Positions 23,721 through 47,789 of a DNA stretch of 64,000 nt are shown in pieces. The stretch comes from Calcarisporiella thermophila CBS 279.70 (Eukaryota > Fungi > Calcarisporiellomycota). Both the position numbers and the translations under genes were made by a program. A model generated the notes under the pieces. The model had not been told where the DNA came from, ran no database searches, and saw only the letters and a program-made list of their open reading frames with translations. The stretch is from positions 504,021 through 568,020 of the forward strand of contig NW_027192210.1 of assembly GCF_041956535.1 (NCBI RefSeq). The letters are read 5' to 3'. Every line of letters begins with the position of its first letter. The first letter of the stretch is position 1.

Positions 23721-24656
23721 ATGAAGACGCCAGTCCTCCTAACGCTCAGCCTGTTGGGTACGACGACGCTAGTTCTCGCTGCACCCAGCAAGCGTGGTCT
23801 CCTCGACAATACCCTCAACAACCCTCAGATCATTGATCACATCAGCGCGTTGAATTCGATGGTCAACTCCAATCCGCAGACGAGCGAGAATACAAATGCA
23901 AACACTAAGGCCTCCGGCCCGGGCGACAACTCGAATCTCCATAAACAGGGCCCGGAGGGCGCGTATATTAGTGGATATCACCACCATCATCACCACCACT
24001 ACGCAAAGAGAGAAGCCATTCCCGAAAACGACGCGAAAATTCAGAAAGATGCCAAGGTGAAAAGGGGAAATAATGCCAAAGCCAAAAAAACGGGCCGGCA
24101 CTCCAATAAGAAAAAGCACAAGGATGATGGCAATCGAGAGCTAATCGCGTCGCGCATGCGTATGGTGCACGAAATGATGAAGCAAGACGTGCACGAGCAC
24201 GGCTCGGCGACCATCGGAAAGCGTGGCGTTCTCGACAACACCCTAAATAACCTTAATGTGCTTGACCATATCTCTGCGCTTGACTCGACGGTCAATTCGA
24301 ACCCGCAAAACGGCGAGAACAGAAGTGCCAACACCAAGGCAAACGGTCCTGGCGACAATTCTGTCTTGTCGAAGCAAGGTGGCGAGGGTATCTATGGCTA
24401 TCACCGTCATCACCACCATCACCACCATTATCCGTACCATTCTCACAATTGGAAGCGAGCGACAGATGCGGACAAGCTCAAGTATGGAAATTTCTATGGT
24501 AAGGACTATGACACAGCAATGGCAGCCATTAAAGCACAGATGCGCAAATCAAAGGGGCCATACACGGAATTTGAAGACGAGCTAATGCGGCGCAATGAAA
24601 TCGATAGCCATGCTAACTATGAGGACACCCTCACCAACAATTCAGCAGCCCTTTAA
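23721..24656 (+). CDS. Secreted Kex2-processed repeat precursor with two Asn-rich repeats, each ending in a poly-His tail; intronless
   Basis: Signal peptide MKTPVLLTLSLLGTTTLVLA, multiple KR sites (one followed by EA-IP), repeats G(L/V)LDNTLNN...ANTKAxGPGDNS; TATA-like TATAAAA at 23460. Confidence 0.85.
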   Translation: MKTPVLLTLSLLGTTTLVLAAPSKRGLLDNTLNNPQIIDHISALNSMVNSNPQTSENTNANTKASGPGDNSNLHKQGPEGAYISGYHHHHHHHYAKREAIPENDAKIQKDAKVKRGNNAKAKKTGRHSNKKKHKDDGNRELIASRMRMVHEMMKQDVHEHGSATIGKRGVLDNTLNNLNVLDHISALDSTVNSNPQNGENRSANTKANGPGDNSVLSKQGGEGIYGYHRHHHHHHHYPYHSHNWKRATDADKLKYGNFYGKDYDTAMAAIKAQMRKSKGPYTEFEDELMRRNEIDSHANYEDTLTNNSAAL

Positions 24657-26217: not shown

Positions 26218-27517
26218 ATGGCATCCAAACTATCCCAGTCAAGCAACCAAAATTCGTCTCAGGCGAAGCCCACGGCCGACGAGCAATATGGAACTCACAT
26301 TCGGCCCACCATGTCCACTCTTAGAAAATGGAGAAAGAAGACGCCAAGGCCAATAAAGTGCGTAGAGATTGTCTTTTTCATATTTTCATAGATGCAGAAA
26401 ATAACAGGGTATTGCTCTACCTATTATTCAACATAGCTGTTTTATGGCTTACCGCATGGACAAGCACCACGAAATTCTGGCCAAATATCCAGGGATGAAC
26501 AACAAAGAGATCAGCCGACTAGTTGGTGAAATGTGGCGCGTGGAACCCGAAGAAGTGAAGACGGAATACCGCAGGCGTGCAGAAGAGTCGAAAAGATTGC
26601 ACAAACTGAATTTTCCCGAGTATCAGTACCGACCAAAGAAGAAATCGGATGTTCAACGGACTGCACTGAATTCTCGAGAAATTTCGAACAGGACTTTGGA
26701 ACAACCGGAGTCTTACACCGAAAGCAAAAGGGTGCTTCATGGGGGAATAGGAAAGAGAAAAATAGAAAGAACTTTACTATGGAGGAAGACCCATGAACAG
26801 TGGGTATCAAAAAGAGTCACGGGTATTGAGGAGCCTGAGGTGGGCTTGAAACTGCCGATAGCGATGCGTATGAGAGGATCGAGCTCGGGAGCTGAATGGG
26901 GAAGATTGCACAATTCCACAGTCTCAACCACGAAAAGTGGCCTGTCTACAGGGGATGTTCAAACTGATATCTCTAACCTCTCACTCAGGCCTTCATATCA
27001 ACTCTGTGGTGGTGCAAACGGAATCACAAGCTGTGGCAGCGATTATATAGGCATGATACCGCTGCCAATTCAAATTACGCATTCGTTACCAGAGTTTTTC
27101 TATAGTTCGAATAGCTATAATGAAATGGAATCGAGGTTATCTCACATTGTCGACAAGCATAGAAATCTTCCCCACTGGCTGTCCGAGTTACAGAGAGGAG
27201 TATCGCATTCTGAACCACCGCCTACGCTACTAGATTTTGAGCATCAACCCACAGCCACGACTTGGACCCGAGCTAGTACAACCTTTAACACTGCACATGG
27301 GTTGTATAATTGGGATATATCCTTTCCACCTTTTAACGAAGAATTCCTGCTCGATTCGAGTCCAATGTGCCATCATTCTTACACCTCTTTTATAGAGAAC
27401 TTTTCTTCGGAATTATCTGGAGAGTATAAGGAGGCCCTTCTAGAGACTGAATTTTTCTCACCTGAAGAGTATCAACAAAAGCAATTCGAGTTGAGCTTTG
27501 AAGGAACACTGGGTTGA
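26218..27517 (+). CDS. MATA/Sex-type (SOX-TCF class) HMG-box transcription factor; 1 intron within the Asn codon of PRPIN
   Basis: Splicing AA|gtgcgt...catag|C gives KTPRPINCFMAYRMDKHHEILAKYPGMNNKEISRLVGEMWR...HKLNFPEYQYRPKKK; acidic C-terminal region. Confidence 0.92.
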
Positions 27518-28491: not shown

Positions 28492-28849
28492 TTATTGTAC
28501 AACTACCGTTCCCGTCATAGAAGGATGTAATGCACAGTGGTATGTAAATTCTCCAGGAGTTGTAAGCACACGGGTAAATGACACTATGGTAAAATATTCT
28601 TAAGCCAAAGCCTCTCACGTCTAGCTTCTATCTAGATAACTTACTTCCAGGACTTAATACTCCAGAGTCCCATCCCGGCCCATCGCTAGTGGCGGTATGC
28701 TCAGCATCGTCATTATTCGCCCATCTTACCGTGTCACCACTGTTTATTGTCACATGTTGGGGTACAAATTGGTAACCGTCCATTACAACTATATGATTTG
28801 CGGCTAAAACAACGCTCAGCGAAGCTAGATAGATTGGTAGGATTTGCAT
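28492..28849 (-). CDS. Secreted type-1 (blue) copper protein, amicyanin/plastocyanin-like cupredoxin, 98 aa; 1 intron (28584-28644)
   Basis: Signal peptide; FVPQHVTINSGDTVRWANNDDAEHTATSD; spliced exon 2 gives PGEFTYHCALHPSMTGTVVVQ* with His/Cys/His/Met ligands. Confidence 0.9.
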
Positions 28850-46814: not shown

Positions 46815-47789
46815 TTAATATGCTTTGCAATTTCCGTTGTTGCGGCGATTCTTGCTCTTCCCCTTCCCCTTGTTCTTCTTGCCCTTGTTCTTCTTGTTCT
46901 TGTTTTTGTTCTTGTTCTTGTTGCCGCATTTTCCATTCACAGAGTTGTTGCAATTGCCCTTAGCCTCGGTATTAGCATTGTTATTTTGCACTTCACTGGA
47001 CTTGGAATTAATGTTGGTGTTAAGGAGAGAAATGTTGTCGATGAGGTGGAGATTGTTGAGAGAACCATCCAAGACACGCTTATCCAGTTGCTTGATAGAG
47101 TTGTTGCCTTTTCCGCGAGCCTCTGTGTTGGCGTTGTTATTCTGCGCCTGGGAGGTCTCGGAGTTGATGAGAGTGTTGAGGGCGGAGATTTGGTCGAGGA
47201 TGTGAGCATTGTTGAGAGAGCCGTCCAAGATCCGTTTATCCAGTTGATTAATAGAGTTGTTGCCTTTGCCACGAGCCTTAGTGTTCGCGTTGTTATTTTG
47301 TGCCTCAGTGGTCTCCGAATCGACATGGACATTGCCAACCGATATATGGTCCGCAATATGAGCGTTGTTAAGGGAACCGTCCAGAATTCGCTTATCGAAC
47401 TGCTTGACAGAATTGTTGTCTTTCCCCTTGGCCTTTGTGTTTGCATTGTTGTTCTCCACGCGCTGTTGTTTCGAGTTAACCAACACATTAAGGAGGTCAA
47501 TATTGCTTAATATATGGGCATTATTAAGCGAACCATCCGCAATGCCGCGGCGACACCAGCGCTTATCGATTTGATTCAACGAGTTGTTGTTGCAGCCATC
47601 GGCGCGAGTATTAGCATTGTTGTTCTCGACCTTTTGGGTGCTGGAGCCAACAAGGGTGTTGAGGATAGAGATGTCACTTGCCACGTGCGCATTGTTTAGG
47701 GTTCCGTCGGCGATGCCTCGAGCAGAGAGGGGAGCCGCTGAAACGGAAAGTGCAAGGGAGATGAAGGTAAGGAATGAAATGTGCTTCAT
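46815..47789 (-). CDS. Secreted Kex2-processed repeat precursor: five ~52-aa Asn-rich repeats separated by DKR, Lys/Asn-rich tail; intronless
   Basis: Signal peptide MKHISFLTFISLALSVSA; repeats (G)I(A/L)DG(S/T)LNNAH...NNNANTxAxGxxNNSxxQxDKR; TATA-like TATAAATA upstream near 47951-47958. Confidence 0.9.
   Translation of the reverse strand: MKHISFLTFISLALSVSAAPLSARGIADGTLNNAHVASDISILNTLVGSSTQKVENNNANTRADGCNNNSLNQIDKRWCRRGIADGSLNNAHILSNIDLLNVLVNSKQQRVENNNANTKAKGKDNNSVKQFDKRILDGSLNNAHIADHISVGNVHVDSETTEAQNNNANTKARGKGNNSINQLDKRILDGSLNNAHILDQISALNTLINSETSQAQNNNANTEARGKGNNSIKQLDKRVLDGSLNNLHLIDNISLLNTNINSKSSEVQNNNANTEAKGNCNNSVNGKCGNKNKNKNKNKKNKGKKNKGKGKSKNRRNNGNCKAY

Follow-up and report, generated by a model that had tools for sequence, protein, structure and literature searches.

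A gene of Calcarisporiella thermophila for a probable histidine-tailed repeat precursor and the peptide module it shares with other fungi and bacteria

Anatomy of the gene

The window analyzed here is a stretch of 64,000 nucleotides from the fungus Calcarisporiella thermophila CBS 279.70 (contig NW_027192210.1, positions 504,021 to 568,020), and all coordinates given without a contig number refer to it. Its subject is a single-exon gene on the + strand at 23721..24656, stop codon included (24654-24656), encoding a protein of 311 residues with the layout of a secreted pre-pro-polyprotein. The open reading frame (ORF) runs uninterrupted from the ATG at 23721, with 0 internal stops in 311 codons, and the protein has its own database entry (P0001, 100% identity). 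Two copies of a core peptide, each carrying a natural run of seven histidines (His7) in its tail and closed by KR, had been described in the original prediction, and they are present as described in the intact ORF. We argue below that the gene probably encodes a Kex2-processed repeat precursor which yields free peptides, and that these peptides belong to a module family that has expanded in this lineage and extends across kingdoms.

The protein begins with MKTPVLLTLSLLGTTTLVLAAPSKR, in which inspection recognizes a signal peptide of eukaryotic type and, behind it, a pro-piece of four residues whose last two are KR. The putative signal peptide, MKTPVLLTLSLLGTTTLVLAA (residues 1-20/21; 23721..23783), consists of MK, 17 hydrophobic or small residues and AAP, is modeled by AlphaFold2 (AF2) as a helix over residues 3-19 with a predicted local distance difference test score (pLDDT) of ~82, and shares an MK(T/S)P-hydrophobic start with 15 paralogues; inspection found no further hydrophobic stretch in the protein. 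The pro-piece, PSKR, ends with the first dibasic site (23784..23795). Cleavage in silico then delimits predicted peptide 1 (residues 26-95, 70 residues; 23796..24005), which comprises the core GLLDNTLNN...GPGDNS and the tail KQGPEGAYISGY-H7-YA and matches the hidden Markov model (HMM) of the module at E=3e-26. Its His7 run is written CAC CAC CAT CAT CAC CAC CAC (23979..23999), and the KR site that closes the peptide lies at 24006..24011. Predicted peptide 2 (residues 169-244, 76 residues; 24225..24452; module HMM E=5e-23) comprises the core GVLDNTLNN...GPGDNS and the tail KQGGEGIYGYHR-H7-YPYHSHNW, with a His7 run of CAT CAC CAC CAT CAC CAC CAT (24408..24428) and a closing KR at 24453..24458. 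The two modules thus end in ...GAYISGY-H7-YA and ...GIYGYHR-H7-YPYHSHNW, each directly before KR, and 146 of the 311 residues (47%) fall within the two predicted peptides.

The peptides are separated by a spacer (residues 98-168; 24012..24224), composed of EAIPENDAKIQKDAKV-KR and a basic piece of 51 residues ending in ...TIGKR. The latter contains a helix (residues ~136-167, ELIASRMRMVHEMMKQDV..TIGKR; 24126..24221) that is identified from the alignment with paralogues and modeled with pLDDT up to 89. This helix of ~30 residues is kept in three aligned paralogues (P0003, P0005 and P0008), directly precedes a module in P0003, P0005 and the window gene, and lies within the region that finds matches elsewhere in the same genome (residues 127-244); its role may be that of a pro-domain, or it may be released as a further peptide. 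Peptide 2 is followed by an acidic extension of 65 residues (24459..24653), for which AF2 proposes helices at 261-276 and 281-304 and for which a search of the genome itself (residues 246-311) returned only the self-match, with no counterpart in any paralogue, so that it is specific to this gene. Complete cleavage and trimming in silico would release PS, the 70-residue peptide, EAIPENDAKIQKDAKV, the basic 51-residue piece, the 76-residue peptide and two acidic C-terminal pieces.

Structure prediction is confident for the full protein only in the signal peptide, the spacer helix and part of the C-terminal extension (overall pLDDT 51). A single module, modeled with an alignment of 84 sequences, reached pLDDT 52, with a tentative helix at positions 3-25 and the remainder disordered. 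The disorder and low pLDDT of the modules argue against a folded repeat domain and fit a peptide precursor.

The module family in Calcarisporiella and in other organisms

The paralogue that had been placed 23 kb away is indeed present, at 46815..47789 on the - strand. It encodes 324 residues, with a signal peptide, five modules separated by KR/RR and a Lys/Asn-rich tail, lacks His runs, and matches the window gene at a BLASTP E=1e-20. The two genes had been taken for a two-gene family, a view that the genome-wide count overturned. In a six-frame translation of the assembly (28 Mb, 116 contigs), the module profile found 74 matches on contigs 2, 8, 9, 12, 14, 20, 21, 23, 28 and 29, a number that places the resemblance far beyond chance. 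Fetching these loci and iterating the module HMM raised the count to 95 module matches, 87 of them full-length, at 1 to 12 per gene. They are carried by 22 ORF pieces at about 18 places, corresponding to ~20 genes given that some pieces are split by N stretches. Since such stretches break the reading frames of several paralogues (L002, L006, L008, L012, L019, L034 and L038), the gene and module counts are lower bounds. The family is thus lineage-expanded in C. thermophila, to 95 or more modules in some 20 genes. A word search of the database retrieved seven named C. thermophila paralogues, all annotated as 'uncharacterized' and 41-73% identical.

The module is an Asn-rich unit of ~48-50 residues with the pattern G-h-h-D-[GN]-[ST]-L-N-N ... 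N-S-x-P-Q ... E-N-x-N-A-N-T-[KR]-A-x-G-x-x-[DN]-N-S. In the alignment of modules (A1), which holds 84 sequences and spans 61 profile positions, S27 and G43 are invariant and D6, N26, N34, N36 and N38 near-invariant; both modules of the window gene match the ~48-position profile, including all seven of these residues. Neither Pfam, searched with two window proteins, five paralogues and ten outside homologues, nor NCBIfam, searched with family proteins, gave anything above cut-off (bacteriocin_sig reached 13.2 bits in NCBIfam against a cut-off of 15.7), and a profile search of the PDB with the module found no match at E<=1.

When the module profile was searched against 1.84 billion representative sequences, 60 proteins were recovered at E<=1e-3. 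The top 16 are Calcarisporiella genes, and the rest are mostly proteins of 50-170 residues with a single module. Sources that could be assigned include actinobacteria (Streptomyces WP_360791965 and WP_124283743, the latter labeled 'MULTISPECIES', Actinokineospora and Phytomonospora), the fungi Orbilia oligospora, Dactylella cylindrospora and Crucibulum laeve, and metagenomes. Genes combining a signal peptide with a module also occur in the plant assemblies of Stipagrostis (P0039, on an 8-Mb contig) and Papaver (P0050, on a 9.6-kb contig), as real plant genes or contaminants. The Dactylella protein (P0028, 788 residues) is a long secreted one with different repeats of its own, bounded by RKR/KR (..GRKRSASLASDLAP..), and toward its C-terminus bears a single module, which stands behind RR.

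The sequence ahead of the module is not the same in all these proteins. About 19 have a Sec signal peptide ending in A-x-A, three metagenomic bacterial proteins have a double-glycine leader (...ELxxVVGG), the Orbilia protein has a signal peptide and a pro-region ending in KKR, and the Dactylella protein has RR; in some homologues nothing but the start Met stands before the module, or a short acidic leader with R as its last residue. After every leader type, the first residues of the module are G-[ILV]-[ILV]-D-G. This convergence of four release routes on one N-terminus is the strongest argument that the fungal modules, too, would be liberated as free peptides.

One of the double-glycine homologues, P0021, lies between a gene of the HlyD family (HlyD_3) and a Peptidase_C39/ABC_membrane gene, the latter followed by an ABC ATPase. 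Leader and adjoining exporter together make up the standard export cassette for double-glycine peptides, here in a bacterial relative of the fungal genes. Over 47 residues, the module of P0021 has 79% identity to a Calcarisporiella module on contig 28 (E=6e-22), and in a tree of 79 modules (48 columns) it is sister to the modules of contigs 28 and 9 with support of 99/89. The Calcarisporiella modules accordingly do not form one clade; those of the window gene fall within a Calcarisporiella-only subclade (support 96/81) with the signature GPGDNS..KQG.EG.Y. With only 48 columns, the base of the tree is not resolved. In a sample of Streptomycetaceae, 8 of 301 genomes had the module, each in one copy. 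This sporadic, single-copy occurrence in bacteria and the very patchy occurrence in fungi fit a possible transfer of the module into fungi. Collectively, these results indicate a cross-kingdom peptide family, so far without a name, whose bacterial members appear to be small exported peptides. As a separate observation, a leaderless bacterial homologue of 54 residues (P0019; metagenome contig L053:6616-7165) starts 5 nt past a gene for an ArsR/SmtB-type helix-turn-helix regulator and adjoins an uptake operon of FecCD, ABC and periplasmic-binding genes, a possible link to metals seen in a single lineage.

Tails, dibasic sites and genomic surroundings

Comparison of the window-gene modules with the closest paralogous modules shows nonsynonymous differences at 12-16% (pN 0.12-0.16) and synonymous differences at ~80% (pS ~0.8, saturated). 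The core is therefore old and constrained at the protein level, and is under purifying selection. The tails are far more variable. Runs of at least 3 His occur in 13 of the 22 ORF pieces and in 25 of the 87 modules (29%), and tails of the paralogues include KQGGEGIYYKGGH-C-DDDD-C-HHHH-W, KKKKHHHH, GGHHHHHW, a 40-residue HRHH stretch and Asp/Trp runs; some are rich in His, Lys, Arg and Tyr. One gene with 11 modules has HGHHHHS within the core, and the 'plain' genes end in short tails, GQHQ or KQYE. The His7/Tyr tails of the window gene are one version of an appendage that many members bear at the C-terminal end of the module and that varies in type (His, Lys, Cys/Asp/His or Asp/Trp). The proposal that the window gene and its neighbor form a major/minor subunit pair does not fit a family of about 20 genes. 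Nor is the plain gene the reference form, since His-rich tails are the commoner condition among the genes.

An alternative view of the His runs is that they are neutral low-complexity expansions, produced by codon slippage and without a role of their own. Tail length and composition do differ widely among paralogues, fewer than a third of the modules have a run, and the genome holds 151 overlapping (CAY)6 matches, of which many are tracts of CAC alone or of CAT alone. The family runs themselves look different: in the 29 runs of at least 4 His, CAC and CAT switch in 54 of 120 adjacent pairs, against 57 expected if the codons were independent. Such random mixing indicates that the runs are not fresh trinucleotide slippage and that the amino acid has been kept while third positions drifted. 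Moreover, the runs recur at the same place, in the C-terminal tail before KR/RR, those of the paralogues are embedded in Cys-x4-6-Cys, Asp or Trp contexts, and GQH or HHHGQG is likewise found at the end of several bacterial homologues. From this comparison of paralogues and distant homologues, we regard neutral expansion as quite unlikely and the tails as apparently selected. The codon order of His7 run 1 is identical to that of the His7 run in a paralogue on contig 21 (L006, C21:~74 kb), which may point to a common origin of the two tails or to gene conversion between them. Outside the family, long mixed-codon (CAY)n runs at C17:508326-508454, C8:782733-782765 and C11:422930-422956 may encode further His-rich proteins.

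The residue pair before the 87 full-length modules is KR in 53 cases and RR in 25, and in 3 more a KR is present without the module Gly, so that 93% of modules lie behind a dibasic pair. This, together with the signal peptide recognized by inspection, bears out the earlier description of a putatively secreted repeat precursor with Kex2-type sites. Across the family, Gly follows 82 of 143 dibasic sites. The spacer of the window gene does open with EAIP after the first KR, as had been noted, but the proposed meaning of KR-EA-IP as a Ste13 signature could not be upheld: the pattern X[AP]X[AP] is seen behind just 2 of the 143 sites, which is chance level, and in the window gene it stands ahead of the spacer and not of a module. 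Modules begin with Gly directly after KR/RR, with none of the X-A/X-P dipeptides that precede each mature peptide in precursors of the alpha-factor type.

The processing machinery is present. Six kexin/furin-type convertase loci with a P domain (P_proprotein, PF01483) scored over cut-off in the genome, along with two DPPIV-like genes, and a genome search found no C39 peptidase. Many fungi have one kexin; the six loci raise the possibility that the convertase set has expanded together with its substrates. Among the loci are C5:1110032-1112179, C7:757755-759762, C17:258385 and C19:558104, and the six include two adjacent pairs in divergent orientation.

The neighbors of the window gene within about 10 kb are of housekeeping or regulatory type (ARP2/3 p16, SET/MYND, HMG box, peroxiredoxin and cyclin). 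Downstream lie an HMG-box gene (PF00505, E=2e-13; 26444-27517) and a small cupredoxin-like ORF (28628-28849). A three-gene module with the HMG factor and the copper protein was considered and rejected, as no such adjacency exists at other family loci; paralogues of the cupredoxin-like ORF (C20:612532 and C19:159652) do not adjoin another family locus either, so that the adjacency in the window looks coincidental. Elsewhere in the genome, three Pfam Hydrophobin matches exceed the cut-off (best E=4e-21; C25:89122-89352 and C18:373349-375051).

Interpretation and comparison with known systems

In the route that we consider probable, the signal peptide would be removed first, kexin-type convertases would cut behind KR/RR, and a carboxypeptidase would trim the basic pair, setting free one peptide of 70 residues and one of 76, along with the spacer pieces. 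The free peptide would be the functional unit, because every release route exposes the N-terminal G-h-h-D-G. From their composition, the tails would be putative ligands of divalent metal and/or a pH switch that turns the charge of the peptide positive at pH 5: the computed charge of the 70-residue peptide (pI, the isoelectric point, 6.3) goes from -2.2 at pH 7 to +5.6 at pH 5, and that of the 76-residue peptide from -1.0 to +8.5.

As for what the peptides do, we think it most likely, given the export context of the bacterial relatives, that the core serves in competition or signalling outside the cell. Several points weigh against it or against the broader scheme. The modules are hydrophilic in composition and their N-terminal segment has a helical hydrophobic moment of 0.10-0.11; the predicted helix is thus no classical amphipathic, membrane-active one, as an antimicrobial peptide might be expected to have; we know of no antimicrobial activity for any member of the module family. 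Bacterial gene contexts other than that of P0021 have no recurring neighbors, and 'bacteriocin-like' therefore applies to one lineage. The restriction of runs of at least 3 His to a minority of modules means that the tail cannot be essential to the function of the core. Finally, the window gene itself has two modules, short of the three similar fragments between KR/RR/KK by which such precursors are defined.

A more far-reaching scenario, which we put forward tentatively and hold to be possible at best, is that an exported peptide of bacteria, small and in one lineage at least similar to bacteriocins, entered fungi and was amplified in a thermophilic fungus of the Mucoromycota to ~20 Kex2 polyprotein genes whose His/Cys/Asp tails act in a metal- or pH-dependent manner. 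If it is true, one mature N-terminus would be exposed by signal peptidase, by a C39 leader peptidase and by kexin in different hosts, and the fungus would be a natural source of poly-His-tagged secreted peptides. The family probably exemplifies a secreted peptide gene that moved between kingdoms and changed its way of release.

Other readings of the gene start from the same anatomy. The released His-tailed and plain modules might assemble together, outside the cell, as a fibre or coat of amyloid-like type comparable to that of Rep1, the His-tailed ones serving as minor, metal-binding subunits. Rich in Asn and Gln and disordered as monomers, the cores have a composition that would permit amyloid formation, and Rep1 offers a precedent, in that Kex2 cuts its precursor to peptides which build amyloid fibrils on hyphae (PMC3133707). 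The ESM Atlas search yielded unnamed actinobacterial clusters at 0.88-0.89, and the nearest named neighbors of a Streptomyces homologue there are rodlin and chaplin clusters, at 0.79-0.82, a range in which matches are often due to chance, for which reason we discarded them as evidence. Set against this are the about 20 genes with many tail types in place of a major/minor pair, the strong hydrophilicity of the modules, which are not amphipathic as repellents or hydrophobins are, and the bacteriocin-type exporter beside one bacterial homologue; the hydrophobin matches, moreover, leave no gap in surface-coat proteins to fill. A fibre or coat is thus unlikely. That the product stays uncleaved, as a secreted or wall-associated disordered repeat protein in which the dibasic pairs are merely part of the repeat unit, is very unlikely: although the confident helices of the spacer and the C-terminal extension could work within an intact protein, nearly all modules begin right behind KR/RR, the stand-alone homologues begin at the same Gly after signal-peptidase or GG-leader sites, or KKR in Orbilia, and the genome has the kexin-like loci to cut the sites.

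Least probable of all, to the point of being remote, is a precursor of RiPPs (peptides that are made by the ribosome and modified after translation) of the ustiloxin or dikaritin type, whose cores would be altered by tailoring enzymes. KR-flanked repeats with Tyr/His-rich segments do recall those Kex2-processed repeat proteins (KEPs) that have Y or HH motifs and lie beside DUF3328 genes (PMC7329392). UstYa/DUF3328 (PF11807), however, had no match anywhere in the genome, in a search that gave none in the control genomes either, and the genes within about 10 kb are unrelated ones in place of the nearby tailoring genes by which such clusters are recognized. The conserved unit, at ~48 residues, is not a short core, and the bacterial homologues are plain exported peptides.

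The preferred reading, a processed precursor of free peptides, finds its closest counterpart in the KEPs, and lends itself to direct tests: thanks to the natural His7 tails, the products should bind readily to metal-affinity resin, and the predicted cleavage at KR can be checked directly. Such precursors are known by the thousands, and to our knowledge almost none has a known function or relatives beyond its genus. The existence of bacterial homologues, one of them wired to a dedicated exporter, therefore opens a route to function through bacterial and fungal peptides studied side by side.

Several known systems share single traits with the family. The Saccharomyces alpha-factor, processed by Kex2, Kex1 and Ste13, is likewise a secreted polyprotein precursor with Kex2-type processing and, according to PMC6339444, the only place where KR-EA-xP has a proven meaning; in the window gene, by contrast, EA-IP after KR precedes the spacer, and the modules start with Gly straight after KR. 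Rep1 of Ustilago maydis is a pre-pro-protein from which cutting in the secretory pathway yields about 11 related peptides, each tens of residues long (PMC3133707), and its processing resembles that predicted for the window gene; its repellents form amphipathic amyloid fibrils on aerial hyphae, whereas the modules are strongly hydrophilic. Double-glycine peptides with C39 ABC exporters (class II bacteriocins and peptide pheromones) are matched by the three metagenomic homologues with ...E-L-x-x-V-x-G-G directly before the module, whereas release from the fungal precursors would depend on a eukaryotic signal peptide and on dibasic sites, in a genome devoid of a detectable C39 peptidase. With regard to the tails, salivary histatins and Helicobacter Hpn are secreted His-rich metal binders whose likeness to the family is compositional. 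The same holds for the Candida albicans zincophore Pra1 (PMC12663325), which shares the extracellular location and the His-rich segments, but bears no sequence relation to the family and differs in that no partner transporter gene lies beside the window gene.

KEPs have been defined by a signal peptide, the absence of a transmembrane segment, at least 3 similar fragments between KR/RR/KK, a repeat share of at least 15% of the protein and a kexin in the genome (PMC6339444), and are common in Mucoromycota, where the peptides tend to be long (Le Marquer et al. 2019, PMC6339444; Umemura 2020, PMC7329392). By inspection, the window gene agrees with them in its signal peptide, the lack of a membrane segment, its tandem related units bounded by KR/RR and its large repeat share, and its genome has the six kexin-like loci; it differs in the number of its modules, a threshold of that pipeline which its paralogues, with 3-12 modules, pass, and in units of 50-76 residues with poly-His tails. 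Bacterial homologues of the repeated unit find no mention in the passages of the two papers that were consulted, nor does Calcarisporiella in the main text of PMC7329392. The KEP architecture is thus already known; what the present analysis adds to it is the cross-kingdom peptide family itself, its amplification in the C. thermophila genome and the apparently selected poly-His tails.

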